The position numbers were made by a program, and so were the translations under genes. DNA of 64,000 nt, taken from Macrostomum lignano (lineage: Eukaryota). The stretch spans positions 1,054,001 through 1,118,000 of the forward strand of contig NIVC01000037.1 of assembly GCA_002269645.1 (NCBI GenBank), given 5' to 3'. Positions 9,645 through 42,108 of the stretch are shown here, piece after piece. Under the pieces are notes generated by a model. The model searched no databases, had not been told where the DNA came from, and worked only from the letters and a program-made list of their open reading frames with translations. Numbering within the stretch: position 1 is the first letter of the stretch; every line of letters begins with the position of its first letter.

Positions 9645-10090
9645 TTCTGTGTCTCATGTCTACCCCTCCTCTCTGCTCTGTGCTGTCTCATGTCTACCCC
9701 TCCTCTCTGCTCTGTGCTGTCTCATGTCTACCCCTCCTCTCTGCTCTGTGCTGTCTCATGTCTACCCTCTCCTCTCTGCTCTGTGCTGTCTCATGTCTAC
9801 CCTCTCCTCTCTGCCCTGTGCTGTCTCATGTCTACCCTCTCCTCTCTGCCCTGTGCTGTCTCATGTCTACCCTCTCCTCTCTGCCCTGTGCTGTCTCATG
9901 TCTACCCTCTCCTCTCTGCTCTGTGCTGTCTCATGTCTACCTCTCCTCTCTGCTCTGTGCTGTCTCATGTCTACCCTCTCCTCTCTGCCCTGTGCTGTCT
10001 CATGTCTACCCTCTCCTCTCTGCCCTGTGCTGTCTCATGTCTACCCCTCCTCTCTGCTCTGTGCTGTCTCATGTCTACCCTCTACTCTCC
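9645..10090. repeat. 34-35-bp minisatellite (TGTCTCATGTCTACCCTCTCCTCTCTGCTCTGTGC)n
   Basis: About 12 direct units. Confidence 0.95.
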
Positions 10091-13128: not shown

Positions 13129-14935
13129 TTCGATAGTTGAACAAGCGAGTTTTGAACTTTAATTCTGAATTGCTTTGCCTGCTGAAAGCGGAGACTTCAA
13201 TAGTGAGTAGCAGAAATTCTTGATTGGTGCTCAGCATGCAGAGCAGCTGTTTCACTATTAGACTTAGGAATTGAGTAAGTTGGAGTCAACTTTAACGCGT
13301 GCTCAATAATTGGCTCACAAGTCGAATGAGTTTGGTTGGGGAACACCTCTGGCTCTGAGCAACTGTTGGCACGAGATTGACAGAAATTTTAGCCGTTAAT
13401 TTGTACCTGTGTGTGAGTATGCAGTTCATTTTTTGCTGCACTGCAGAAGCATGAGCAGGATAGCAAAAATAGGAAATATATTTATGTATACTACTTAGGA
13501 ATTTCGAAATTAAATAATAAGCTGATTGACTCTCTATAAGTACTTCTTGATTTTAGCGCAGAATTTTGCTGGTATTTGCGTACAGATCCGAGTCAAGGAC
13601 TACTAGACTTGAAGGACGCAACACTTGCAAATCGTGCAAAAATAGTTGAAGGCCGGTTATTAAAATGTCTGTATCTCCGAATCGGTTGCATGTAGAAGGT
13701 TAATTTTTTCGACAGATTTTTCAGACTTTTGTCCCCTACCAAGTAAGTCAGTTAGTTTAGTTTCCAGCTAGATGTAGATTCAGGAAATCCTGTACAATGG
13801 AGACACCCCATTTTTAAGCGTTTGATAGCTGTTCAAATCTTCAAATTTAGGAAGCAAAAATTCGTAGTAAAGTAGCTGAAAATCTTAAGCGCATTTTTTG
13901 TGAATACGCTGTGAATAACGAAGTGTTCCTAGTGGTCCTTGATCCGAGTGCGCACCAACCTCAGCAGTTGCCTAATGATAAGGCATCATTAGTCTTATTG
14001 ATTTTCTATTGATGGGCAAGATATATGGACAAGATGGACAAGTGCTCCTGCTCAGGTAGATATCGAATTCAGATTTAAAAGTTGCTCAAGCTTTTTTCAT
14101 AAATGCTACCGGAGACCGGCAAGCAATAGAAGCGTAGGCAAAATTTCTGTTCTTATCTCACTGTTGGGGTTGTTCTAGTCGGATTTTTCTCCACCGATTT
14201 TATGGTGAAAACCCATATGGAGCGCTATATAGAGAAAGCATTTTTGTCAAATCAGTTTTCAAAATGCAAAAGTATTTTGAGCGTTTCTCCTCGCCGATAT
14301 AATTTTTCTAACTTTTTCTTGACTATATGATGAATGATGAATCGATTTGTATTGTTTTGAGACCAATACCATAATCATTTTTATTGTTGAGAGCTTGGAG
14401 TCAACTTGGAGTCGCTATCTCAAAATATCGTCTTTTCAGGAAACAATATGTCCCTCTCTTGTTGTGCAGCTAAAAACAAGGAAGAAACTTAAATGATAAG
14501 GTTTAGATTTTGACAAATGTTTTTGTTTTATTAACTCGTGCGTCGTCTCAAATCTTTAAATTTTACACTGAACTGAATAAATTAATATGTGCACGTCGGA
14601 CGGAGGCGATACGCGATTAAAGTAGTTAGAGGAAGTAATTGAGTGATGTTAGGTCAGCATAGTGTCTATAGACTACATGTCATAATTGTGTAAGCTACAG
14701 CTAGAACTGTAAAAAAAGTGTAATCGTTTTATTACCTTCCCGCCCTGTCTACTAATTCTAATTTTAAGCAGTACAGCATATATATTATACCGCAGTTTGC
14801 TCTCTGTCACTGTATTTATTAACCAACTTACCAACTATCTATCTAGTAGTTTCGTTAGAATTTTATTTATTTTTTTGTTGTTACATTGTAATATGTCAGA
14901 TTTCTGTAGACAGAAAGACAGGTAGTTAGACATTT

Positions 14936-15376
14936 GGCAAAGTCCTACTTTGCTGCGTTAAATTATTTTGACGATAAAAAGTTAAAATCACGCTAATTAG
15001 AGTTACAGTTACACTGGAGTAGAGTTAGGAGAGTAGTTAGAAGGACGTAGGGCAGGCCCATGTCAGCAATTAATAGTAGTGAGCAACCCAGTACATGAAG
15101 TTGCCGAACGTCTTCTCCGGGAAGAGGCGGCGCCAGAGGAACTCATTCAGGTGAGTCTCGAACAGTGCATCACTCGTGCCATGCATCCTTCGGAATTTGT
15201 CCTTGACATGTGCCCACGATCCCTCAATGGTGTTGGTGTGCACGGTCCTTTGGTGGTGGGCCTACGTCCTTCTAACTACTCTCCTAACTCTACTCCAGTG
15301 TAACTGTAACTCTAATTAGCGTGATTTTAACTTTTTATCGTCAAAATAATTTAACGCAGCAAAGTAGGACTTTGCC
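14936..15376 (-). mobile_element. Merlin (IS1595-like) non-autonomous deletion derivative, 441 bp
   Basis: Perfect 116-bp TIRs starting GGCAAAGTCC (14936-15051 / 15261-15376); 8-bp TSD AGACATTT (14928-14935 / 15377-15384). Minus strand 15252-15070 encodes QRTVHTNTIEGSWAHVKDKFRRMHGTSDALFETHLNEFLWRR..., matching the C-terminal catalytic segment of IS1595/Merlin transposases. Confidence 0.9.
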
Positions 15377-15802
15377 AGACATTTATTTATACCAGGGCTA
15401 TTTTTCTTTTTGATGACATGAAAAGTAAGAAATCCTAGGCCTAACTAAAGAGATTAAACTATATAGGCTTTAGTCAGTAGAATTTAGTCACTACTAAACC
15501 TAGGCTATAGTAGGCCTATATGTCCTTTAAAACATTGATTATTAAAGGAATCTTTTCTATTGAAAGACATTTTAAGCTTGTCTATCTATTGATTAAGTTA
15601 TTATTGATTGTTTAGCATTGCTATCTCAGACTTAGGTCAAGTAGAGGTCAGAAAAGATCTCATTAATCTCAGGATCAATATTCAAGATTTTGACTTTTTT
15701 TATCAAATCTGGATTAGGCCTAAATCTTAATTTTTTAAAAGCTTTTTGTTTTTAAGGGTCTAATTTTATATTTGATTTATTATATTTCAGGTATCCTATC
15801 AA

Positions 15803-18800
15803 ATGTCCTTACCAATCAAGGTCATCCACTTCATTATTCTGCTGAGTGTAAGTCTCTGGGTTTTTTTTTTCGCCAGAGATAAGGTGCGAAATCGCACCTT
15901 GTGCCAAATTTCAAGGTGCGATTTTAAGGCTCAGAGTGCAATTTCTCTTGAGTCTTGTTTAGAATGTGAGGGTTTCACGAGAGATATTCAGCCAGACATT
16001 CAAAACGATCGTCTGTAACTTTAAACAAAATTGACCCGCTTCAACCATCTTTTTGGCAAATACTTACGCAAGTGTTGGGCGTCGAATAAGCTTTAATTTA
16101 TTAACTGATGTAAAAATCCTTCTGACATACATTGATTTAAAAATTGCTTAGCAACACTCTGATTAGAAATCGCTTTACTGTTGACTAAAATTGTTTTGAT
16201 CGTAGCAGCCTAAAAGCAGATACTGGATTTAAAAATGCTTCGATTTACTCTATACGCATGTCTCAGCTTTAAAATGACACCTCAGGCGTTGCAAAAGACA
16301 GCTTTGATGCTGAGATATTCGACATTAAACAATTGCTTTGCGCAAACTCACATTCAGAAATTTCACTGATTTTTATCGATATTTGTGCAGTTGCCGTGTC
16401 CTTGTTTTTCATCAGAAACTTGTCAAATTCTAGTCATGTCCAGTTTAAACCTGGACTTCTCTTAAACTGTCTTAAGTATTTGATTTTTAATGATTCCTGC
16501 CTTTATATTGCATAGATTGTACCTGAGTCAGTGAGTCTATGAGTGTACATTTGTACATATGGCGACCAATCATGACTTTTTCACCACTTTGCGGTTCAAA
16601 TAAATATACGAGTGTACGAGAAACATGTTCCAACTGTTATTGAGAGAAATTGACGTCGCGTTTATTAACAGTCAGTGGCAATTAATATGAAGCAAATAGT
16701 TTATTGTTATGTTTTTACATTTTTTGCGTGGCAATTCTGCTATCCAAATTGGAATGAGGTAAGCGGTGGGATCTAATGTACTGCTAAGCTTTCCAATCCC
16801 TACAGACTACTGTAGCAGTTCTTAACTTTTTTCTGTCTTGACTTCTAGACTCGGAATTCGGAACAACCTAAGGAGCCGCATGAAAATATTTAATTGGATA
16901 AAGATATTTTCTAAAAACAGCTCAAGTTGTGACACATCTTCTTCTCGCCTCAGTCCATCAACTGCTGCTCCTTCTGAGACCGAAGCGATCGTGAAAGTAA
17001 AACAGATCAGTTTAGATCCCATGGCCATGAATACAACCATTTCAATTGTGAACCTGCTTCGCTTACGAGTACGAGCACTAGCCTTCCATTTGATGCCATT
17101 AGCTCACTTAACTCTGAAATAGTTCAAGGACGGTTCCAAATGTTGAGATCTGACGTAGAAGCAGTCCAATTTGCGGAAATTTATCAACTGGACTCCATGA
17201 ATCACTCCAATGAAAGGCGGCGAATAGCTGCAGAATGCGTAAACAAGTTTAAGTGAGTCACAAAAACCCCATTTACAGTAACTACATACACTTGTACGTT
17301 AGCAAGGCTCCATGCGATGGTTAATAAATGGAGAAGTAGACAAGCATCTGAACAAATATTGAATAAAAATCAGTGAAGTTTCCGAATGTGAGTTTGAGCA
17401 AAGCAATGTTTAGTTTCGAATATCTCAGCATCAAAGCTGTCTTTTGCAACGCCTGAGATGTCATTTTAAAGCTGAGACATGCGTATAGACATGACTAGAA
17501 TTTGACGAGATTCTGATGAAAAACAAGGACACGGCAACTGCACAAATATCAACAAAAAATCAGTGAAATTTCTGAATGTGAGTTTGCGCAAAGCAATGCA
17601 TGTTTAGTGTCAAATATCTCAGCATCAAAGCTGTCTTTTGCGACGCCTGAGGTGTCATTTTAAAGCTGAGACATGCGTATAGACATGACTAGAATTTGAC
17701 GAGATTCTGATGAAAAACAAGGACACGGCAACTGCACAAATATCAACAAAAAATCAGTGAAATTTCTGAATGTGAGTTTGCGCAAAGCAATGCATGTTTA
17801 GTGTCAAATATCTCAGCATCAAAGCTGTCTTTTGCAACGCCTGAGGTGTCATTTTAAAGCTGAGACATGCGTATAGAGTAAATCGAAGCATTTTTAAATC
17901 CAGTATCTGCTTTTAGGCTGCTACGATCAAAACAATTTTAGTCAACAGTAAAGCGATTTCTAATCAGAGCTAGTGTTGCTAAGCAATTTTTAAATCAATG
18001 TATGTCAGAAGGATTTTTACATCAGTTAATAAATTAAAGCTTATTCGACGCCCAACACTTGCGTAAGTATTTGCCAAAAAGATGGTTGAAGCGGGTCAAT
18101 TTTGTTTAAAGTTACAGACAATCATTTTGAATGTCTGTCTTCGGAATGGGTCTCCCTAAAACACGCCCCGCACCGCCCTGCAGCGCTACACATTAAAACA
18201 AATTGGACTATAACTAAAGACACTTCAGAATGCGTTTTCTGTTAAGCTTCAAGTTTTTATTAAATTTAGTTTTTTTACTTTGAAATATAAAATTCGGTGA
18301 ACAATAAGTGATATTAATAATAATATTAATAAAATAATAATATCATAATTTAATAATGAAAACGAGAATATAAAAAAAAATAATATTTAAAAAAATAAAT
18401 AAAGATATTTATTCCATTACTATTTTAACTTTTCCTTGCAATCAAATAGGCCCCCCTACTGCATTGACAAAAAATGTTATAATGTGTAGCGGTTCGGGGC
18501 CCGGTGCGGGGCGTGTTTTAGGGAGCCCCTGTCTGAATATCTCTCGTGAAACCCTCACATTGCTCACATTTCAGACAACTGGGAATGTATATTTTAATAT
18601 CTTACATAAGGCTATAGCTATAGGCTATATCGCCTATATGACTTATAGGATTTAAAGAGTTATTTTGTTTCATATTTTAAGGCAGTGCATAAAAAATAGC
18701 TTAAGCATGGTTAAGCCTTTAAAGAAAAATGGTTATAAGACCGCACCTAAACCGCACCTACTTTTTTAATTTCAGGGTGCGATTTTAAAATTTAGGGTGC

Positions 18801-21800
18801 ATACGCACACTCTACGCACAAAAAAAAACCCTGGTAAGTCTGCTTCATATCTACATAGCTCCTTACAACAAAGTAGAAGAGAGCTTCAACTTGCAGGCAA
18901 CTCATGACATTCTGTACCATGGCTATAACCTATCCGCTGTAAGTTCTTGCTTTCACATAGTATTATGGTTGTAATGTACATTCATATACATGCTCATTAG
19001 GGATTGAAATCCTGGGATCCCAGGATCCCAAAATCCTAGGATTGGGTCCAAATCCTGGGATTTCCAGTCCTGGGATTTGGGGTCCCAAATCCTGGGACTA
19101 ATTCTTGTTATTATTTTTTACAAAAAGTGTTATAATATGAACATAATTAGGCCCACAATTATAGTTTGTTATACTGTACTAATGTCCATTATTGCCTCAC
19201 ATCATGTGGTGCCTTTTTAAACCCTGCATCATAGATTTAAATGTGAAATTTATTCTAATGTAAATTTTGATATATGATTGACTTCTTTACTACTAATTAG
19301 TACTTTTATACTACTTACTTAAATATGTCACAATATGTTTTTCATCTACAAAAATATTATTATCTCTATAACAATAAAAATGGAAGCAAAAATATGTTTA
19401 GCGCATATTTTGCCTTAAAATTTCAACCCAGAAGCTTAAAAATCTGTATTTTTTCTGAGATTGGCCAAAGTCTGGGATTAAATCCCAGGATCCAATTATT
19501 GCAAAAAAACTGGGATTTTGCAATCCCTAACGCTCACACAGGATGTACAGCGGCCCTGAATTTCTCAGTGTCAGGCATGTGCACTCTGCATGCGCAACTG
19601 ATCTATAATAAAAACAAGACTCTTCAAAACTCCGACCTCCCTCCCCAACCATCGCCAGTACGATCACAAGGAGTTCCCCGGCCCGGTGCCGCGCACCTTC
19701 CTCGGTCCACTGGCCCTGGCCGCTGCCGCTGCCCCGACGCGGCTGCTGCTGCCAGCCGCCCTGGGACTCTCCGGCGCCGTCGATCAGCCCGAGGCGGCCG
19801 CTGTAGGGCACAGTCGCCTGCCGATGCTGTTCATTGTTCGAGCGCTGCTGGCCGCCGCGGTGGCCTGGTCCCTGGCCGACTTCGCCCAGTCGCTGGGCCC
19901 GGCAGCAGCCAGTTGGTTCGTGGCAATCTCGGCCAGCCAGTTCCACCTGCTGTTCTACGCGTCCAGGACTTTGCCCAATACGTTCGCTATGGCGCTGGCG
20001 CTGCCAGGCTTGCGCGCTCTGCTGCTGGATGGCGACTGGCGCAGCTGCGTGCGCTGGGCCGGACTGGCCGGGCTGCTGTTTCGCAGCGAACTCGGCCTGC
20101 TGTTCGGGCCGCCAGCTGTCTATCTGTTAGCTACTGGGAGGCTGCGACCTACTGATGCCGTGCGGACGGCTGCGCCTGTTGCTGTTGGCTGCGCTGGTGA
20201 GTTCAGTTTATTTAACGTCAGTATAAGCTCTGTCAAACCGAATTCGCAAACAACATGTCATCTCAGGTTGACAGCCAGCTACATAAAATAGATTCTCAGA
20301 CTCTCCAAGGGAGGGGAAATGTCAGATTCCCCAAGCTCCATAATAATCTCAGAATCCTCAAGCTCCATAATAATCTCAGATTCCCCAAGCTCCATCATAA
20401 TCTCAGAATCCCCAAGCTCCATCATCATCTCAGATTCCCCAAGCTCCATCATCATCTCAGATTCCCCAAGCTCACCTCAGATTCCCAAGCTCCATCATCA
20501 TCTCAGATTCCCCAAGCTCCATAATAATCTCAGAATCCCCAAGCTCCATCATCATCTTAGATTCCCTAAGCTCCATCAATCTTAGATTCCCCAAGCTCAT
20601 CTTAGATTCCCCAAGCTCCATCATCTCAGATTCCCCAAACTCCATCATCATCTCAGATTCCGAAAGCTCCACCATCTCAGATTCTCCAAGCTCCATCATC
20701 TCAGATTCCCCAAGCTCCATCATCTCCGATTCCCCAAGCTCCATCATCATCTCAGATTCCCCAAGCTTCATAATAATCTCAGATTTCCCAAGCTTCATAA
20801 TAATCTCAGATTCCCCAAGCTCCATCATCTTAGATTCCCTAAGCTCCATTATCATCTCCGATTCCCCAAGCTCTATAATCTGCGAGTTCACCATTCACAA
20901 ACCTGCATCAGCACTGAACTTCCCCGCAGCGCTCACTGTTGCCGTGGACTCGGTGTTCTGGGGCCGTCTAGTCTGGCCTGAGCTCTCCGTGCTGCTCTTC
21001 AACACCTGGCAGAACAAGAGCTCGCTATGGGGCACTCAGCCTTTCCTCTGGTACTTCTACTCGGCTCTGCCTCGGTGTTTGCTATTCTCGGCGCCGTTGG
21101 CACTTGCTAGCGCTAAATTGGCGCCGCGCGCCAGGCCACTACTGGCTTCGGCAGTAGTCTTTGTGCTGGCCTATTCCTGCCTACCGCACAAAGAGCTCCG
21201 CTTCGTGCTCTACTCTGTGCCGCTGTTCAACGCCTCCGCGGCCTGCGCTTGTGATGCTATTTTTAGCAACCGACGGGATTCCCCTCGAGAGAGGTCTCCC
21301 CCAGAAAAATCTGTGGATAAAGCAGGCGGTGAATCGATAGTAACATCAACCGAATCGCGTCGACGAATTACCGGAAATCGGGCTTCGGCCGAGTCTAGCC
21401 CGGACTGTCCGGGTAGGGAATCTCCCAAGGCTCAGGGGGAATCCTGGGAATCCCCGCTGCTCATGACAGTCGGCCGGGTCTTCTGCCTTGGCCACCTGCT
21501 GGGTAACGCCGGGGCCGCCGGCCTTCTGGCCCTGGCGGCCGCCTGGAATTATCCCGGCGGCGAGGCCGTCAGCCTGCTGCACACCTACCTGCACTCCAGC
21601 GCGTCGGTGCACGTGCACCTGTGCAACTTGGCCGCCCAGACTGGCGCCTCGAGATTCTTGCAGTTGCACGACGCTTGGATCTATAATAAAACTGAGGGCC
21701 TCAATCTGCTCACCGACTATCGGCCATTTAGTCACGTGATCGCCGAGCCAGAGTTCGCGGACGCCGTCGGCCTGACGCGGACCTGCCGAACCATCGGGGC

Positions 21801-21927
21801 CGTCTCTGCGTTTGACGGGTTCAACGGGTTCAAAGACCTGTTGGCCGAGGGTTTCTCCGGCCTGTGCTGGCACCGGCTGCTGAGGCTGCGTACGGCCCTG
21901 CTGATGCTGGAAAAGCCGCATGTTTGA
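15803..21927 (+). CDS. ALG12: Dol-P-Man alpha-1,6-mannosyltransferase ALG12; coding segments 15803-15847, 18834-18938, 19659-20196, 20930-21927 (561 aa if the insertion in exon 1 is removed)
   Basis: Family motifs [93 protein letters not shown] introns 18939-19658 (phase 0) and 20197-20929 (phase 1) keep the frame. Functionality of this copy is uncertain because exon 1 is interrupted. Confidence 0.93.
15962..18561. mobile_element. Long-TIR foldback element nested in the hAT element
   Basis: Arm about 15962-16440 is the reverse complement of about 17365-18135 plus 18533-18561; a roughly 190-bp subunit is triplicated in the right arm (17367-17878). Confidence 0.7.
18136..18529. mobile_element. 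MITE-like insert in the right foldback arm
   Basis: Imperfect TIRs CTCCCTAAAACACGCCCCGCACC...GGTGCGGGGCGTGTTTTAGGGAG around an AT-rich core; possible CTGTC duplication. Confidence 0.6.
18998..19529. mobile_element. hAT-type MITE in an ALG12 intron
   Basis: TIR TAGGGATTG...CAATCCCTA; diverged 8-bp TSD ATGCTCAT / ACGCTCAC; subterminal ATCC(T/C)GGGAT repeats. Confidence 0.7.
20315..20880. repeat. 27-bp minisatellite (CTCAGATTCCCCAAGCTCCATCATCAT)n in an ALG12 intron
   Basis: Direct tandem units. Confidence 0.93.
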
Positions 21928-22835: not shown

Positions 22836-23249
22836 ATGATTGCTAAAATTTACCTGAAAGTTGTATCTTAAATTATGTGCCAAAAGGGATTTAACTCCTT
22901 TTAACAGCAATTTGTAATGTTGATCTTATCATTTGAAAGCACATTATTCAGAGTGTGGCACTTTTTTCGTTGTTTTTTATCGTTATGCATTCATTACATG
23001 CTACTTTTGTGCAACTAAGTTAGTAGAGCGTTTGTGTCATGCACCATATTTCATTGATTTATATTCTATAAACTTGTTAGCTTGGTATGGTAAAATCATC
23101 GATTTAATCCATAGCTATTTGGCGTAACTCGGTGACAGAAAATTTTCAAGAGTTAAAATTTCAGTTTTCTGACTTTATTTACTGTAGGGCTAATTCAGAT
23201 TAGAAATTCACATCAAAGCACAAAGTTCTTCAGGTTGGTCGATGTTCTA

Positions 23250-26200
23250 GTTTGTGAAATGTCTAGTTTGTGAATTGTCCAGTTTGTGAAATGTCTAGTT
23301 TGTGAAATGTCTAGTTTGTGAAGTGTCTAGTTTGTGAATTGTCCAGTTTGTGAAGTGTCTAGTTTGTGAATTGTCTAGTTTGTGCAATATCTAGTTTGTG
23401 AAATGTCTAGTTTGTGAAATATCTAGTTTGTGAAATGTCTAGTCTGTGAAATGTCTAGTTTGTGAAATGTCTAGTTTGTGAAATGTCTAGTTTGTGAAGT
23501 GTCTAGTTTGTGAATTGTCCAGTTTGTGAAGTGTCTAGTTTGTGAATTGTCTAGTTTGTGAAGTGTCTAGTTTGTGAAGTGTCTAGTTTGGGAAGTGTCT
23601 AGTTTGTGAAATGTCTAGTTTGTGAATTGTCCAGTTTGTGAAATGTCTAGTTTGTGAAGTGTCTAGTTTGTAAAATGTCTAGTTTGTGAAATGTCTAGTT
23701 TGTGAAGTGTCTAGTTTGTGAAATGTCTAGTTTGTGAAGTGTCTAGTTTGTGAAGTGTCTAGTTTGTGAAGTGTCTAGTTTGTGAAATGTCTAGTTTGTG
23801 AAATGTCTAGTTTGTGAAGTGTCTAGTTTGTGAAGTGTCTAGTTTGTGAAATGTCTAGTTTGTGAAGTGTCTAGTTTGTGAAATGTCTAGTTTGTGAAGT
23901 GTCTAGTTTGTGAAGTGTCTAGTTTGTGAAGTGTCTAGTTTGTGAAATGTCTAGTTTGTGAAGTGTCTAGTTTGTGAAATGTCTAGTTTGTGAAGTGTCT
24001 AGTTTGTGAATTGTCCAGTTTGTGAAGTGTCTAGTTTGTGAATTGTCTAGTTTGTAAAATGTCTAGTTTGTGAAATGTCTAGTTTGTGAAGTGTCTAGTT
24101 TGTGAAATGTCTAGTTTGTGAAGTGTCTAGTTTGTGAAGTGTCTAGTTTGTGAAGTGTCTAGTTTGTGAAATGTCTAGTTTGTGAAATGTCTAGTTTGTG
24201 AAATGTCTAGTTTGTGAAATGTCTAGTTTGTAAAATGTCTAGTTTGTGAAATGTCTAGTTTGTGAAATGTCTAGTTTGTGAAATGTCTAGTTTGTGAAGT
24301 GTCTAGTTTGTGAAATGTCTAGTTTGTGAAATGTCTAGTTTGTGAAATGTCTAGTTTGTGAAATGTCTAGTTTGTGAAATGTCTAGTTTGTGAAATGTCT
24401 AGTTTGTGAAATGTCTAGTTTGTGAAGTGTCTAGTTTGTGAAATGTCTAGTTTGTGAAATGTCTAGTTTGTGAAATGTCTAGTTTGTGAAATGTCTAGTT
24501 TGTAAAATGTCTAGTTTGTGAAATGTCTAGTTTGTGAAATGTCTAGTTTGTGAAATGTCTAGTTTGTGAAATGTCTAGTTTGTGAAGTGTCTAGTTTGTG
24601 AAGTGTCTAGTTTGTGAAATGTCTAGTTTGTGAAGTGTCTAGTTTGTGAAGTGTCTAGTTTGTGAAGTGTCTAGTTTGTGAAGTGTCTAGTTTGTGAAAT
24701 GTCTAGTTTGTGAAGTGTCTAGTTTGTGAAGTGTCTAGTTTGTGAAATGTCTAGTTTGTGAAATATCCAGTTTGTGAAGTGTCTAGTTTGTGAAATGTCT
24801 AGTTTGTGAAGTGTCTAGTTTGTGAAATGTCTAGTTTGTGAAATATCTAGTTTGTGAAGTGTCTAGTTTTTGAAATGTCTAGTTTGTGAAGTGTCTAGTT
24901 TGTGAAATGTCTAGTTTGTGAAATGTCTAGTTTGTGAAATGTCTAGTTTGTGAAATGTCTAGTTTGTGAAGTGTCTAGTTTGTGAAATGTCTAGTTTGTG
25001 AAATGTCTAGTTTGTGAAATGTCTAGTTTGTGAAGTGTCTAGTTTGTGAAATGTCTAGTTTGTGAAATGTCTAGTTTGTGAAATGTCTAGTTTGTGAAAT
25101 GTCTAGTTTGTGAAATGTCTAGTTTGTAAAATGTCTAGTTTGTGAAATGTCTAGTTTGTGAAATGTCTAGTTTGTGAAATGTCTAGTTTGTGAAATGTCT
25201 AGTTTGTGAAGTGTCTAGTTTGTGAAGTGTCTAGTTTGTGAAATGTCTAGTTTGTGAAGTGTCTAGTTTGTGAAGTGTCTAGTTTGTGAAGTGTCTAGTT
25301 TGTGAAGTGTCTAGTTTGTGAAATGTCTAGTTTGTGAAGTGTCTAGTTTGTGAAGTGTCTAGTTTGTGAAATGTCTAGTTTGTGAAATATCCAGTTTGTG
25401 AAGTGTCTAGTTTGTGAAATGTCTAGTTTGTGAAGTGTCTAGTTTGTGAAATGTCTAGTTTGTGAAATATCTAGTTTGTGAAGTGTCTAGTTTTTGAAAT
25501 GTCTAGTTTGTGAAGTGTCTAGTTTGTGAAATGTCTAGTTTGTGAAGTGTCTAGTTTGTGAAGTGTCTAGTTTGTGAAATGTCTAGTTTGTGAAATGTCT
25601 AGTTTGTGAAATATCTAGTTTGTGAAGTGTCTAGTTTTTGAAATGTCTAGTTTGTGAAGTGTCTAGTTTGTGAAATGTCTAGTTTGTGAAGTGTCTAGTT
25701 TGTGAAATGTCTAGTTTGTGAAATATCTAGTTTGTGAAGTGTCTAGTTTTTGAAATGTCTAGTTTGTGAAGTGTCTAGTTTTTGAAATGTCTAGTTTGTG
25801 AAGTGTCTAGTTTGTGAAGTGTCTAGTTTGTGAAATGTCTAGTTTGTGAAATGTCTAGTTTGTGAAATATCTAGTTTGTGAAGTGTCTAGTTTTTGAAAT
25901 GTCTAGTTTGTGAAGTGTCTAGTTTGTGAAATGTCTAGTTTGTGAAGTGTCTAGTTTGTGAAATGTCTAGTTTGTGAAATATCTAGTTTGTGAAGTGTCT
26001 AGTTTGTGAAATGTCTAGTTTGTGAAGTGTCTAGTTTGTGAAATGTCTAGTTTGTGAAGTGTCTAGTTTGTGAAGTGTCTAGTTTGTGAAGTGTCTAGTT
26101 TGTGAAGTGTCTAGTTTGTGAAATGTCTAGTTTGTGAAATGTCTAGTTTGTGAAATGTCTAGTTTGTGAAATGTCTAGTTTGTGAAATGTCTAGTTTGTG

Positions 26201-27800
26201 AAATGTCTAGTTTGTGAAGTGTCTAGTTTGTGAATTGTCCAGTTTGTGAAGTGTCTAGTTTGTGAAATGTCTAGTTTGTGAAATGTCCAGTTTGTGAAAT
26301 GTCTAGTTTGTGAAGTGCCTAGTTTGTGAAGTGTCTAGTTTGTGAAGTGTCTAGTTTGTGAAGTGTCTAGTTTGTGAAATGTCTAGTTTGTGAAATGTCT
26401 AGTTTGTGAAATGTCTAGTTTGTGAAGTGTCTAGTTTGTGAAGTGTCTAGTTTGTGAAATGTCTAGTTTGTGAAATGTCTAGTTTGTGGAGTGTCTAGTT
26501 TGTGAAATGTCTAGTTTGTGAAGTGCCTAGTTTGTGAAGTGTCTAGTTTGTGAAGTGTCTAGTTTGTGAAGTGTCTAGTTTGTGAAGTGCCTAGTTTGTG
26601 AAATGTCTAGTTTGTGAAGTGTCTAGTCTGTGAAGTGTCTAGTTTGTGAAATATCTAGTTTGTGAAATGTCTAGTTTGTGAAATGTCTAGTTTGTGGAGT
26701 GTCTAGTTTGTGAAATGTCTAGTTTGTGAATTGTCCAGTTTGTGAAGTGTCTAGTTTGTGAAATGTCTAGTTTGTGAAGTGTCTAGTTTGTGAAATATCT
26801 AGTTTGTGAAATGTCTAGTTTGTGAAATGTCTAGTTTGTGGAGTGTCTAGTTGTGAAATGTCTAGTTTGTGAATTGTCCAGTTTGTGAAGTGTCTAGTTT
26901 GTGAAATGTCTAGTTTGTGAAGTGTCTAGTTTGTGAAATGTCTAGTTTGTGAAATGTCTAGTTTGTGAAATGCCTAGTTTGTGAAGTGTCTAGTTTGTGA
27001 AATATCTAGTTTGTGAAATGTCTAGTTTGTGAATTGTCCAGTTTGTGAAGTGTCTAGTTTGTGAAATGTCTAGTTTGTGAAGTGTCTAGTTTGTGAAATG
27101 TCTAGTTTGTGAAATGTCTAGTTTGTGAAATGCCTAGTTTGTGAAGTGTCTAGTTTGTGAAATGTCTAGTTTGTGAAATATCTAGTTTGTGAAATGTCTA
27201 GTTTGTGAATTGTCCAGTTTGTGAAGTGTCTAGTTTGTGAAATGTCTAGTTTGTGAAGTGTCTAGTTTGTGAAATATCTAGTTTGTGAAATGTCTAGTTT
27301 GTGAAATGTCTAGTTTGTGGAGTGTCTAGTTTGTGAAATGTCTAGTTTGTGAATTGTCCAGTTTGTGAAGTGTCTAGTTTGTGAAATGTCTAGTTTGTGA
27401 AGTGTCTAGTTTGTGAAATGTCTAGTTTGTGAAGTGTCTAGTTTGTGAAATGCCTAGTTTGTGGAGTGTCTAGTTTGTGAAATGTCTAGTTTGTGAATTG
27501 TCCAGTTTGTGAAGTGTCTAGTTTGTGAAATGTCTGGTTTGTGGAGTGTCTAGTTTGTGAAATGTCTAGTTTGTGGAGTGTCTAGTTTGTGGAGTGTCTA
27601 GTTTGTGGAGTGTCTAGTTTGTGAAGTGTCTAGTTTGTGGAGTGTCTAGTTTGTGAAGTGTCTAGTTTGTGAAATGTCTAGTTTGTGAAGTGTCTAGTTT
27701 GTGAAATGTCTAGTTTGTGAAATGCCTAGTCTGTGAAATGTCTAGTCTGTGAAATGTCTAGTTTGTGAAATGCCTAGTCTGTGAAATGTCTAGTTTGTGT
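23250..27800. repeat. 16-bp satellite (GTCTAGTTTGTGAAAT)n, about 4.5 kb
   Basis: Roughly 280 direct units with aaat/aagt/aatt variants. Confidence 0.98.
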
Positions 27801-27999
27801 AATATCGCGAGAAGGGATTTTCAGAAATTCCTTAAATTGCATGTACCTGGACGGTCTTGAATGATGTTAATTTCCAACTCTTGTTTTGGTCGAGCCTGAA
27901 GAAGGCATTTTTGCTAGGTCGAGACTGGAAGAGGTCCAGGGCCGACCGTGTGAAATTGAGAGCCTTTTATTTGGCTCTTCTTTTCTTTAACTACAGTAA

Positions 28000-36832: not shown

Positions 36833-39800
36833 TCACATATGACTCATCTCCCTGGCAACGGCCAGGCTGTTTGCGCTGCCCGGATACCGGCCGGCAGCTT
36901 TGACTCCGCTGGCCCGCGGACTGTCGCAGTCGCCGATCTGCTGCTGCTGCTCCCCGGAGCTCCGGCGTCCCTTGTAGGCGTGTCGCCAGATGTCAACGAA
37001 GCAGCAGGCGGAGTGGAAGCGGAAGAAGATGATCAATGGCGAGCACACGTACGAGAAGATCTGCGAGGCAATCAGCACGTAGGCATCGTTGTAATTAGGC
37101 AGATTGTTGATCTCGCGAACCTCCAGGGTGTACACCACCCACAGGGCCAGGTTGCCTAGCAACAGAGCGGCGATCATCTCGCGGCCGGGCTTGCGCTCGA
37201 TTGCCTCGCTGGTGCTGGAGCGCCGCTTCTCGCCGTCCAACACGAGGAACACCTGGGAATGGGGGGGAGAGATGATTCTATGCTCACATGCAGATTGTCC
37301 CCAGATGACTCCATGCCTCACATATGGAATCCCCCCTCTAGTTAAGCCCCAAATCTTGCGATTACATGTAAAATGTCCCTAAATGACCTTCATTGTAACT
37401 TTGCCCTTAGTTGACCCTTTATCTCAGCTATTTATGTAAAATGCACCTAGATAATCCTCCAATCTGCACCTTTAAAATCTCAATTCCCTAGGCGACCCCC
37501 AATATTTACCTGTAAAATGTCCCTAGATGACCCCTAATATGCACCTGTAAGATGTGCCCGGATGATCCCCAATGTGTGCAGGTAAAATGTCCCTAGATGA
37601 CCTTCCCCCAAATGTGTATATGTAAAATGTCCCTAGATGACCCCCAAATGTGCACATGTAAAATGTCCCTAGAGGACCCCCAAATGTGCACATGTAAAAT
37701 GTCCCTAGATGACCCTCAAATGTGCACATGTAAAATGTCCCTAGATGATCCCTAATGCGCTACTGTAAGATGTCCCTAGATGACCCCCAATGTGCACATG
37801 TAAGATGTCCCTAGATGACCCCCAATGTGCACATGTAAAATGTCCCTAGATGACCCCCAATGTGCACATGTAAAATGTCCCTAGGGCCTAGATGACCTCA
37901 AATGTGCTCCTGTGAGATGTCCCTAGATGAACCCCAATGTGCACACATAAAATGTCCCTAGATGACCCCCAAATGTGCACATAAAATGTCCCTAGATGAC
38001 CCCCAATGTGCACATGTAAAATGTCTTTAGGGCCTAGATGACCCCCAATGTGCACATGTAAGATGTCCCTAGATGACCCCTCCACCGCAGACTAGCTCCC
38101 ACAGACTATCACAATCGCGCAGCACTCTCACCTGCAGCAGACTCTGCATAATGCATATAATTCCCTGAGTTAGCCGCAGCGCAAAAAACAGGCCCTTCTC
38201 GGAGAAGGCGCCAAACAGCTGAAACAGTTCGAACGCTAGCACGCCGATGAGCGTGATGCCTAGCAGCCAGGCATCCGGTCCGGTGCTCATCCGCTGCACC
38301 AGCGTCAGAGCCTGCATCTGCTTGTAGGCCACTATGCACAGCAGCAGATTGAGCGTCAGCAAAGCCAGATCAGTGCTCAAGTAGATGTACTTGCCAACAA
38401 TGAGATCTTCGGGCTGATCATTAATATAGATAGTGAAGTAGATGCCGGACACGATGCCAACAATCATCTGCAGAGCGCCCAGAAAGAATCCTTTATCGCT
38501 TTTATAACAACTAGCCGAGAAGCTGGTCTGCGCTTTCTTCCGATTTCTCAAACACTTTTTGCCAACATTGAAGCCCTTAGTCTGGATGACGTCGAGAAAC
38601 TTGCCGACATTGCAGTACAGAACGTAGCACGAGAACGCCGCCATGAGCGAGTACTCGATAGTGAACGGGAACAGGTAGGGCGCCATTCGCCAGAACACCT
38701 CCTTGGAGCAGTTCGCTGCGGCGGCAACGCTGTGGTCAAGCGAAGCGGCTTTAGTGGCCGTGACGACCGCCGCCAACCCGGAGGTGTTGGTGCCGTTGGC
38801 GTCGCCATAGTTACCGACTAGTTGGTGTTCAAGCAACGAACCAGCCGGTGTTGGCGAGGAATACGAGTGCAGAACTTTGGCCGCGTTCTTGTGCGCATTG
38901 TGGCCGGTCTCGAGCAGGATGGCTTGGAACCAGACGCACATGTTGGTGGCCATCAGGTGCATGAAGCCCAGGACTGACACCTAATGGGGGGCATTTAGAA
39001 TGCAGACAGATGCAACAATTATCTAATAATATGCTCGAGAGTTGAGGGGCGATTCTCGGAGGCAGTTGAGGGGCGATTCTCGGAGGGAGTTGAGGGGCGA
39101 TTCTCAAAGGGAGTTGAGGGGCGATTCTCAAAGGGAGTTGAGGGGCGATTCTCAAAGGGAGTTGAGGGCGATTCTCGGAGGAAGTTGAGGGGCGATTCTC
39201 GGAGGCAGTTGAGGGGCGATTCTCAGAGGAAGTTGAGGGGCGATTCTCGGAGGGAGTTGAGGGCCGATTCTCGGAGGAAGTTGAGGGGCGATTCTCGGAG
39301 GCAGTTGAGGGGCGATTCTCGGAGGCAGTTGAGGGGCGATTCTCAGAGGAAGTTGAGGGGCGATTCTCGGAGGGAGTTGAGGGCCGATTCTCGGAGGAAG
39401 TTGAGGGGCGATTCTCGGAGGCAGTTGAGGGGCGATTCTCGGAGGAAGTTGAGGGGCGATTCTCGGAGGGAGCTGAGGGGCGATCCACGAGGGAGCTGAG
39501 GGGCGATCCACGGAGGGAGCTGAGGGGCGATCTACGGAGGGAGCTGAGGGGCGATCCACGGAGGGAGCGGAGGGGCGATTCTCGGAGGGAGTTGAGGGGC
39601 GATTCTCAGGAGTTGAGGGGCGATTCTAAGGAGTTGAGGGGCGATTCTCGAAAGGAGTTTTCATGGGTAAATTTTCGTCTTAAATTGACGAAAATGAGTG
39701 AATAATGAAAGAAATGACAACAGTCTCCTAGAAAGGAGAAATTGAAACTGCTCACCTTATGATAGATATTAACAGACACCTTGCTATACTTGAAAATAAA

Positions 39801-42108
39801 GAATGTCTGCAACACGGTGAATGCGATGCTCAGCGCATATTGAATTAATTGCACTGCCGCTTTCCCGCCGCCAACGCAATGATTGCTGAGCTCAGTCAGC
39901 GTGTCGACAATTCTTAGAAAGTCGTGCGTCACCTTCAAAGCGCCGAAGATGAAACAGGCAACCCGAAGGAAGAACGAAGGCGAATGAGACTCCTGCAGGG
40001 ACAGCACTGAGTAGGCCTGAATCTCGTGCACTCCGAGCTCTTTAGCATTTTGAATCAGAGTTGAGTTGATTCTCTTCATGTAGGCCTTCTGGCGCCCGAT
40101 CGTGTCCAGGTTGGAGCCGTGGGTGACGCTGTTCTGCACGTCGAAGGTGACACCGACCTGACTGCTGTGGCCAGCCGACATGCCGGACGCTGTTGTCCGC
40201 TGATGCTCGGCGATCTCCGGCTCCTGCAGCTCAATCTGAGTGTGCCCGGTGGCGCCGTTGCATTTTAAACTGTGCTGATGATTCTGCTGCTGCTGATTGC
40301 ACTGTCTGCTTCCGTCCTGAGAATTGTTTTAGCAAAATCTTTGTTAATTTGCCTTTAAAGGCGCTTTTTCAGAGCGCTCTTAGATGAGCTTTGTTGCTGG
40401 GGTGTTTGGGGGTATCATTTAGTAATTGAGGTTATGCTTGCATGCGATTCCCAATCGAGGGAATTCGAAGGGGTATTTTTCTACAATGGGCTTGGAGGCG
40501 ATTCCCAATTGAGGGAATTTAAAGGGGTATTATTCTACGATGGACTTGGAGGCGATTCCCAATTGAGGGAATTTAAAGGGGTATTTTTCTACGATGGGCT
40601 TGTGGCCGATTTCGAATCGGGAGAATGTTTTTGGGAACATATTAATTAATAAACCGATTATGAGTTATTGGCATTGTTGAATTGCATGTACACACAGGTT
40701 AGTTTAGCACTTAGCAATACATTTTTACACAAATTACTATGCTATAACTCAGGCAATTGTTGCATCAATAAAAAAGCACGCCAACACAAAATAAGCAGGT
40801 CAAAAATAATCACGGGTGCAAAGCGTGCGTCTTTAGCGTTAATAAAATTTATAGGCAAATCAAGAATCTGACAATTTTCTTCGATTAACCACACCACGCC
40901 ACAAAGTGAACGGTGCAATACGAATCCAGTTTTAGAGAAATCGTTTATCACATTTACACGATTACAAACCTCAACACCAAGCAGTGCTTGACCCTGAAAA
41001 GGTGTATTAGCATAGTAAACAAGAGATATAGACTATGAGGAATGATAGAAAATTTCAAATGCGTTAAATAACTTTAGTACAGAAGGGAGTTCACAAGCTC
41101 AAAGCTTCACACAGTCTCAAACCATTCACTCCATAATTTCAAAGCTTCACACAGTCTCAAACCATTCACTCCACAATTTCAAAGCTTCACACAGTCTCAA
41201 ACCATTCACTCCACAATTTCAAAGCTTCACACAGTCTCAAACCATTCACTCCACAATTTCAAAGCTTCACAGTCTCAAACCATTCACTCCACAATTTCAA
41301 AGCTTCACACAGTCTCAAACCATTCACTCCACAATTTCAAAGCTTCACACAGTCTCAAACCATTCACTCCACAATCTCAAAGCTTCACAGTCTAAAACAA
41401 TGAACTTCACTATTTCAGAGCTTCACCCACCTCTTTGCCGTGAAAATTGTGATTACTCTCTGACACTGAGAATCGGCCAATTCGAAACTCAACCCGACCG
41501 CCGCCGCTATTCCCAGCCGCCGCAGCCGCAGCCGCAGCATTACCTGGCCGCTCGGACTCCTGCAGTCGGACCAGTTCACCCGAACAGCCCGGATTCTCGA
41601 CAAACAATTTATGAGACGGCCTGCTCATCACCCAGATCATGAAGAATAGCAGGAATGCGATAGCGGACGAGTGCAATATGATGTAGAAGGCGCACAGGTA
41701 CCACTCGGAGTAGGGCTTCGCTCGCACGTAGCTACTCAGAGGAAAGATCAGGCCGAATAGGGTTAGGAAGATGGCGTACAGCATGGCCATCTGGTTGAAT
41801 CTGGCAGAGTTATCGCCGCCGCCGCCGCCGCTTTCATCGCCAGACCGGCGCGGACGGCCTCCGTGAGCGTCGTCCTCCATGCGCCTCGGGCCCAGGTCGG
41901 CGAAATCGCCAACAGATTCTGAGCGGCTGCCGACTCTGTTGCCGCCGAGGTCTGCGCCGCTGCCGCCGCTGTTCTCGTCAGTGCGGCTCAGCTGTCCAGT
42001 TTTGAGCAGATGCGGCAGATGAGCCAAAACGTGAAAGGCGCCGCCTGTGCCAGTTGTACTGTGGTAGGAATGGCGAGTCTCCGAGTTGCGACTGGCCGAG
42101 GGAAACAT
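36833..42108 (-). CDS. OTOP: Otopetrin-family proton channel; exons 42108-41632 (3' end uncertain), 40316-39756, 38980-38132, 37252-36833
   Basis: Motifs GSxFLRVACFIFG, FFIFKYSK, LGFMHLMATNMCVW, PYLFPFTIEYSL, GFFLG, RKPGREMIAALLLGNLALW, PLIIFFRFHSACC are characteristic of otopetrins. The last two introns are clean phase-0 GT-AG; the first donor is ambiguous. Confidence 0.9.
37430..38080. repeat. 35-36-bp minisatellite filling an otopetrin intron
   Basis: (GTAAAATGTCCCTAGATGACCCCCAAATGTGCACAT)n. Confidence 0.93.
39040..39655. repeat. 24-bp minisatellite (GAGTTGAGGGGCGATTCTCGGAGG)n in an otopetrin intron
   Basis: Direct tandem units. Confidence 0.95.
41097..41393. repeat. 40-bp minisatellite, about 7 units, in otopetrin intron 1
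   Basis: (TCAAAGCTTCACACAGTCTCAAACCATTCACTCCACAATT)n. Confidence 0.95.

Follow-up and report, generated by a model that had tools for sequence, protein, structure and literature searches.

We analysed a 64,000-nucleotide stretch of DNA from Macrostomum lignano (line DV1, assembly Mlig_3_7, scaffold NIVC01000037.1), called the window in the following, which contains a gene for the mannosyltransferase ALG12. The first coding exon of this gene is split by a DNA transposon, which is flanked by a perfect 8-bp target-site duplication (TSD), GTAAGTCT. All positions are window positions. The gene and the insertion are arranged as follows:

15791..15802, plus strand: 5' end of the gene as annotated, 12 nt ahead of the ATG and right behind TTTCAG
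15803..15847, plus strand: ALG12 exon 1a, ATG at 15803, 15 codons including the start, first half of transmembrane segment 1
15848-15855, plus strand: left copy of the TSD, GTAAGTCT, encoding Val-Ser-Le(u) of the intact exon and matching the donor consensus as agt|GTAAGT
15856..18833, unstranded: DNA transposon, 2,978 bp, composite, 36% G+C, longest open reading frame (ORF) 94 aa
18834-18841, plus strand: right copy of the TSD, GTAAGTCT, in the context ctg|GTAAGT, a donor-like site stronger than the left copy
18842..18938, plus strand: ALG12 exon 1b, residues 19-50, with the natural donor gct|GTAAGT at its end
19659..20196, plus strand: ALG12 exon 2, 69% G+C
20930..21927, plus strand: ALG12 exon 3, running to the stop codon

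Joining the flanks without the element restores the conserved ALG12 N-terminus, and the joined exons encode 561 aa with a match to Pfam Glyco_transf_22 (E = 3e-50, 172 bits against a cut-off of 23.8). Exons 1b, 2 and 3 of the interrupted gene are open and the introns are GT-AG. In a protein search the model was 100% identical to M. lignano proteins, and three GenBank proteins of Mlig_3_7 belong to the cluster; outside Macrostomum, at 34-50% identity, the named matches were ALG12 or a generic 'Mannosyltransferase', and the rest were unnamed or 'hypothetical'. Among solved structures the one match is PDB 9s6t, 'Mannosyltransferase' (E = 4e-70, chain A aligned to residues 11-343). Exon 1b carries the N-terminal motif P-x-x-K-V-E-E-S-F-N-x-Q-A-x-H-D, which the element severs from the start codon. 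In an alignment of 13 ALG12 proteins, the residues H20, P25, K28, V29, E30, E31, S32, F33, N34, Q36, A37, H39 and D40 are invariant. Judged by its domain, its named relatives and this motif, the gene is that of ALG12, which would be the GT22 Dol-P-Man:Man7GlcNAc2-PP-Dol alpha-1,6-mannosyltransferase. PDB 9s6t has Gln at the position of Glu30, reading KVQESF, whereas all 13 aligned ALG12 proteins read KVEESF. This Gln may be an engineered catalytic-site mutation, which, if so, would underline the importance of the motif severed by the transposon.

The evidence for a true insertion comes from two further ALG12 loci of the same assembly, L003 (NIVC01002073.1) and L002 (NIVC01001344.1), both of which lack the insert. 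A single GTAAGTCT is found at each of these empty sites (L003 10052-10059, L002 8881-8888). Both loci are colinear with window positions 15377-15855 and again from 18834 onwards, with alignments that overlap by exactly 8 bases. The left flanks of the empty sites are 99.6-99.8% identical to the window, and the flanks of the three loci as a whole 98.3-99.8%. Across the join, the window flanks agree with L002 in 72 of 72 bases and show one synonymous difference from L003; the uninterrupted exon 1 junction reads ...CTGAGTGTAAGTCTGCTT.... Because two empty sites carry one GTAAGTCT and no insert, this is a true insertion, and it is younger than the divergence of the three ALG12 copies.

L003 encodes all 561 residues, and its protein differs from that of the window copy solely at residue 77, with Ala in place of Thr. 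Codon 77 (19737-19739) is ACG, Thr, in the interrupted copy and Ala in both empty-site copies, and is thus usable as a copy marker; in the mRNA it would come about 180 nt after the insertion point. L002 lacks one C from a CCC run in exon 2 (about 9908-9911, window 19896-19900), which shifts the frame; because of this 1-nt deletion, the GenBank model at L002, PAA69139.1, starts at Met161. The deletion may be a long-read homopolymer error, or it may mark a second disabled copy. Additionally, a second ALG12 paralog family, 58% identical, lies on other scaffolds in several copies (L004 10001-13197; L005 10001-13206; PAA84453.1, 494 aa). For the assembly as a whole, 69.6% is reported to lie in three-copy blocks of the subgenomes S, L1 and L2, which show about 2% single-nucleotide divergence and very large insertion-deletion differences (bioRxiv 10.1101/2023.04.19.537444), and 180 Mb of duplicated non-repetitive sequence have been described in this genome (PMC5730564). 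The pattern seen here fits, and the three ALG12 loci are probably the S, L1 and L2 copies.

A first-pass annotation of the window had described a 2,978-bp element with an 8-bp TSD in the first transmembrane segment, 15 codons into an otherwise intact ALG12 gene, and had proposed to look for an uninterrupted allele or paralog. The insertion is borne out by the sequence together with the two empty sites, the intact remainder by the open exons 1b-3 and the Glyco_transf_22 match, and the identity of the gene by the domain, the named relatives and the invariant motif. The uninterrupted copies exist in L002 and L003, in the latter with a complete protein. Of the two explanations then put forward, the first, a null allele or paralog, is supported by an insertion private to one of three near-identical loci, with a complete L003 and with the 58%-identical paralog family.

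Some further features of the gene itself were recorded. G+C content differs strongly between exons: exon 1 has 40-42%, as in the AT-rich surroundings, exon 2 has 69% and exon 3 has 61%. Exon 1 is the sole AT-rich ALG12 exon, and it is the one targeted by the transposon. Exon 3 contains an in-frame stretch of ~65 residues rich in Ser, Arg, Pro and Glu (21271-21471, residues about 344-410), for which a by-eye comparison with the 58%-identical M. lignano paralog P0126 showed no counterpart in that paralog; it may have been inserted in this lineage, or it may be a small intron that went unrecognised. Intron 2 consists mostly, at 20322-20877, of a 27-bp minisatellite with about 22 copies, and its heavily gapped alignments among the three gene copies suggest length differences between them.

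The second explanation was an intron gain, on which the GenBank annotation of the locus bears. PAA92942.1 (BOX15_Mlig033286g1) is annotated as an intact protein across the element. Its locus (NIVC01000037.1:1059791-1085927) corresponds to window 5791-31927, with 26,137/26,137 bases identical, and joining 15791-15855, 18842-18938, 19659-20196 and 20930-21927 reproduces it residue for residue. The coding sequence (CDS) omits 2,986 nt, namely the transposon and one TSD copy, with non-canonical boundaries. Its N-terminus, VSYQM, is the translation of 15791-15805, where the local sequence is tttcag|GTATCC; from the way the gene models were built (PMC5730564), the site at 15791 is possibly a spliced-leader trans-splice acceptor.

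Taken at face value, such an intact CDS speaks for a nascent transposon-derived intron, in which the element and one TSD copy would be removed from the transcript, either exactly at non-canonical sites or nearly so at cryptic ones, so that the enzyme would still be made and the element would belong to an Introner-like family. We considered the CDS as evidence of splicing and rejected it, since projection of transcripts onto several loci accounts for the join. In the published pipeline a de novo transcriptome was mapped with BLAT (globalNearBest = 0.01, minCover = 0.95) and then merged into gene models, and globalNearBest = 0.01 retains all placements up to 1% below the best (PMC5730564). Because near-best placements are retained, a transcript of L003 or L002 would be projected onto the interrupted locus with the element as a gap. 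The intact protein annotated here is thus an artefact of transcripts projected from the sister loci. In the older ML2 assembly, the Thr77 model A0A1I8IGM8 begins exactly at exon 2, as would be expected were exon 1 broken there as well.

This Thr77 model bears on yet another explanation, namely that the insert stems from a chimeric or wrongly joined long read and is not part of the animal's genome. Mlig_3_7 is repeat-rich and PacBio-based, and 36% of its length has been reported to lie in scaffolds chimeric between subgenomes (bioRxiv 10.1101/2023.04.19.537444). However, it is transposition, and not misassembly, that leaves a perfect 8-bp TSD directly beside matched terminal repeats where sister loci have a precise empty site, and the Thr77 model of the independent ML2 assembly lacks exon 1. 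The chance of an assembly artefact is therefore next to negligible.

To see what splicing across the element could yield, donors and acceptors were ranked by an approximate generic matrix and by plain pyrimidine content, so that the scores give a rough order only. Nine cuts restore the exon exactly (GT..TG, TA..GG, AA..GT, AG..TA, GT..AA, TC..AG, CT..GT, TC..TC and CT..CT), and none of the nine is a canonical pair, whether GT/GC-AG or AT-AC. The earlier statement that exact removal is impossible with GT-AG is consequently correct. It had also been claimed that the TSD is a perfect splice donor. On this rough generic matrix the left GTAAGT (15848) scores equal to the natural intron-1 donor, the intronic bases being identical, and by consensus the site is a good one; however, in the empty-site copies the same GTAAGT is ordinary coding sequence, AGT GTA AGT for Ser-Val-Ser. 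Since it was already there in the empty alleles, it was neither brought nor made by the transposon.

Across the element, 47 GT-AG pairs that are in frame and free of stops were listed. The three in-frame rescues named in the first-pass annotation are among the possibilities, but they are not the only ones, as it had held, because donor 15848 also joins in frame to AG 18881, AG 18896 and the natural intron-1 acceptor 19658. These three joins lose 16, 21 or 35 residues, respectively. With 18858, the nearest reasonable acceptor, the same donor shifts the frame and runs into a stop five codons on. Each GT-AG join open to donor 15848 costs either the frame or an invariant ALG12 motif. To keep the motif in frame, either the donors 15846/15852, at about -7 on the generic matrix, or a purine-rich acceptor are required. 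Seven sense-strand AATAAA signals lie inside the element. Read-through from the ATG into the element ends after 71 codons, and the resulting 71-aa ORF has no exact match in protein records.

From these joins it could be proposed that the locus is a hypomorph, in which splicing from 15848 to 19658, 18881 or 18896 gives an in-frame protein lacking 16-35 N-terminal residues that retains some function or has a regulatory or dominant role. The joins are in frame and stop-free, and both the donor 15848 (GTAAGT) and the acceptor 19658 (pyrimidine fraction 0.80) look normal. On the other hand, the lost stretch includes residues invariant in the 13 ALG12 proteins, such as those of the K-V-E-E-S-F-N core, and with it would go half of the first transmembrane segment, so that activity seems unlikely. 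Because invariant residues are lost, the products of donor 15848 with 18881, 18896 or 19658 are unlikely to be functional, and we regard a hypomorph as very unlikely.

In the case of the nascent intron, the splice sites give a similar picture. In its favour are the left TSD, as good a donor as that of the gene's own intron 1 on the rough matrix, the undamaged downstream exons, and the creation of introns by DNA transposons with the help of a TSD in other eukaryotes (PMC9860276, PMC11282704). Against it stand the nine exact cuts with no canonical pair among them, the weak donors or purine-rich acceptors that motif-keeping routes would need, and the seven AATAAA signals. Both natural ALG12 introns are moreover ordinary GT-AG, and the annotated CDS is accounted for by projection. 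Together with what the element itself shows, described below, this makes a nascent intron very improbable. That the Thr77 copy of ALG12 is still expressed, with the 2,986-nt insert removed exactly or near-exactly, possibly via pairing of its inverted repeat, is exceedingly doubtful.

The element is built from the following parts, all of them unstranded:

15856..15869: left terminal inverted repeat (TIR), CTGGGTTTTTTTTT, in which position 2 (T) is the sole mismatch with the other end
15881..15920: left subterminal GGTGCG/CGCACC cluster, 3 copies
15955..16440: left arm of a long internal inverted repeat, the arms being 94-100% complementary
17344..17877: tandem 194-bp unit, 2.8 repeats, inside the right arm, from repeat analysis
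17488..18578: right arm of the long internal inverted repeat, longer through the tandem duplication and a nested insertion
18140..18528: nested insertion in the right arm, resembling a miniature inverted-repeat transposable element (MITE), with inverted ends, GGGTCTCCCTAAAACACGCCCCGCACCG at the left
18742..18801: right subterminal GGTGCG/CGCACC cluster, from a motif scan
18820..18833: right TIR, AAAAAAAAACCCTG, which reads CAGGGTTTTTTTTT from outside

The TIRs, CTGGGTTTTTTTTT and CAGGGTTTTTTTTT, are thus 14 bp long with 1 mismatch. The subterminal motif is concentrated at the ends, with 6/16 GGTGCG sites of the whole window lying no further than about 90 bp from one or the other end of the element. 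The nested MITE-like insertion is flanked by CTGTC at 18135-18139 and 18529-18533, and in a by-eye comparison of the arms the left arm is continuous where the right arm holds it. The whole long inverted repeat (15955-18578) was also considered as a nested insertion and was dropped, as it has no flanking TSD.

No transposase was found in the element: a Pfam scan of its five longest reading frames gave nothing meaningful, and nine of its ORFs, concatenated and searched once against the whole protein database, returned no protein homolog. As its ORFs reach at most 94 aa and have neither a Pfam match nor a protein homolog, the element is non-autonomous. Ten long ORFs of the window were likewise scanned with Pfam and showed no transposase, otopetrin being the only match. 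A second copy of the element was not detected by blastn or by scans for terminal and subterminal motifs in the window and the loci L002-L005, about 155 kb in all.

As to its class, the element is hAT-like because of its 8-bp duplication, its short terminal repeats with an outer CAGGG, and the GGTGCG clusters in both subterminal regions, and its ends make a non-autonomous member of the hAT superfamily the most likely assignment. In hAT elements the terminal pentamer follows the rule YARNG at both ends. The right end, CAGGG, fits this rule and has the outer pentamer of Ac/Ds; the left end, CTGGG, deviates at position 2 in this single copy. Compared with the target consensus nTnnnnAn, the T at position 2 of GTAAGTCT fits and the C at position 7 does not, in this one site. 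The CTGGG terminus, the half-fitting target and the lack of an autonomous partner or second copy in the same sequence of about 155 kb all make the hAT assignment less certain. Set beside non-autonomous hAT elements, i.e. Ds-type derivatives and hAT MITEs, the element shares the 8-bp TSD, the 14-bp TIRs, the subterminal motif clusters, the missing transposase and the AT-rich target. It differs from them in its CTGGG end, in the half-fitting target and in its composite interior of inverted repeat, tandem duplication and nested MITE.

We then compared the element with Introners, which are families of many similar whole introns with working boundaries and of which several take one splice site from the TSD (PMC9860276, PMC12130899, PMC11282704). 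Members of such a family lie in unrelated genes, and their similarity extends as far as the exon-intron boundaries (PMC12130899). Like the Introners of Micromonas, Aureococcus, Symbiodinium and others, it is a transposon with TIRs and a TSD in a coding exon, and its TSD starts with GT, as in families whose 5' splice site comes from the TSD. Introners, unlike the ALG12 element, come in many copies, and their boundaries are GY-AG or have been verified. The ALG12 element was found in one copy, its 3' end is TG instead of AG, no polypyrimidine tract is present, and the element plus its TSD does not give working boundaries that restore the frame or change it by a few codons. The first-pass annotation had pointed out that the left terminus CTGGG would read CCCAG in the opposite orientation. 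As sequence logic this holds, but the CCCAG depends on the one base in which the two terminal repeats differ, and the would-be acceptor comes after a run of A (A10), not a pyrimidine tract, the pyrimidine fraction there being 0.35. The other end, the usual hAT CAGGG, gives CCCTG at the 3' end in either orientation. With no canonical restoring pair, with a GTAAGT that was there before the insertion and with no second copy in about 155 kb, the intron-gain or Introner explanation is unsupported. In the literature, nothing relevant was found on Introners or hAT/MITE elements in Macrostomum, and no report of non-canonical splicing in this genus.

Other systems with transposons in or near splice sites are also instructive. 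Insertions of Ds/dSpm in maize exons are partly spliced from the transcript, as in alleles of wx, adh1, bz and sh2-m1, and for these insertion alleles the splicing has been shown by cDNA. They resemble the ALG12 case in that a cut-and-paste element interrupts a coding exon and has splice-like sites at or close to its termini and TSD, and by this likeness the expected outcome at ALG12 would be mixed aberrant transcripts from cryptic sites. At ALG12, in contrast to the maize alleles, no canonical pair restores the frame exactly, and the case is known from sequence alone. An exact intron at ALG12 would share its non-canonical ends, its inverted repeats and the TSD-like repeats flanking it with the MITE-derived introns of Fritillaria borealis and the non-conventional introns of euglenids; in these lineages the splicing system has changed, and such introns number in the thousands (PMC11282704). 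In M. lignano, by contrast, the introns in the three ALG12 copies are ordinary GT-AG (two natural introns per gene), and no altered splicing system in flatworms was reported in the literature found. Finally, the loss of duplicates after polyploidy by way of a transposon shows the same features, with one of three homeologous copies struck by a lineage-specific insertion, an intact sister and copy-specific insertions in the neighbourhood. We see no essential difference between this category and the ALG12 case, and it is the one that fits.

Two neighbouring insertions indeed lie upstream of the interrupted copy. The first is a second copy-specific transposon at 14936-15376, about 430 bp upstream of the ALG12 ATG, 433 bp long, with an 8-bp TSD AGACATTT and 116-bp perfect TIRs; it is absent from L002 and L003. 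Its minus strand carries what is left of the C-terminus of an IS1595/Merlin-like transposase (E = 8e-4 with Pfam DDE_Tnp_IS1595, a match below the cut-off), and the insertion may affect the promoter of the interrupted ALG12 copy. The second, at 13594-13940, is a third polymorphic insertion of about 338 bp with a 9-bp TSD GATCCGAGT and the ends CAAGGAC...GTCCTT, found in the window and in L003 (100% identical) and absent from L002. The two upstream insertions, both with perfect TSDs, fall within 2.3 kb, and with the exon insertion there are three copy-specific insertions in 5.3 kb. Since several copy-specific insertions have perfect TSDs, DNA transposons have been active since the divergence of the three copies.

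Altogether, we favour, at a probability of roughly 0.85, the reading that one of the three homeologous ALG12 copies is inactivated by the recent insertion of a non-autonomous hAT-like element, that this is tolerated through redundancy, and that it is masked in GenBank by transcript projection. A cut-and-paste transposon would have entered the AT-rich exon 1 of one ALG12 copy, duplicating GTAAGTCT and parting the ATG, along with half of the first transmembrane segment, from the invariant motif near the N-terminus. As every plausible GT-AG splice would shift the frame or remove invariant residues, the copy is most likely a null or a nascent pseudogene. Inactivation would be tolerated because the intact sister L003 and the second ALG12 paralog family persist. 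The donor-like GTAAGT would be a coincidence of the coding sequence AGT GTA AGT. We infer both the loss of function and the membership in hAT. The case is most likely a recent gene disruption of an ordinary sort, one more example of an event that is well known.

Several points weigh against this reading. Firstly, the lost expression and function of the interrupted copy are deduced from its sequence. Secondly, exons 1b-3 are otherwise sound, with a single residue different from L003, which is compatible with continued use; undamaged exons would, on the other hand, also fit a very recent insertion. Thirdly, as the left GTAAGT scores like the intron-1 donor on the rough matrix, some splicing from it is likely. 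Fourthly, if the L002 deletion is real, just one fully intact copy is left in the family, and the redundancy argument becomes slightly weaker.

The remainder of the window is rich in repeats. A 16-bp satellite, TCTAGTTTGTGAAATG, occurs in about 285 copies at 23246-27803 and at many other sites of the window, and more than 25 other strong tandem arrays with periods of 4-253 bp were found. Because of the satellite and these arrays, G+C content and GC skew swing to extremes along the window. On the minus strand at 38072-40181, two ORFs match Pfam Otopetrin (E = 2e-40 and 9e-7) and are probably exons of an otopetrin gene. With the larger of them, a protein database search gave no match at E <= 1e-20, a surprising outcome in a genome that has been annotated.

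No evidence favouring the birth of an intron was found. If the element were spliced out after all, the locus would offer a rare view of metazoan intron birth with empty-site sister alleles as built-in controls. As a disrupted copy, the finding matters mainly for curation: the annotation of PAA92942.1 is worth flagging to curators, and transcript projection onto near-identical homeologs can mask disrupted copies in the M. lignano genome. For the organism, the three copy-specific insertions point to recent or ongoing DNA-transposon activity, and ALG12 provides a clean and datable example of transposon-driven divergence among the three subgenome copies of a neopolyploid animal.

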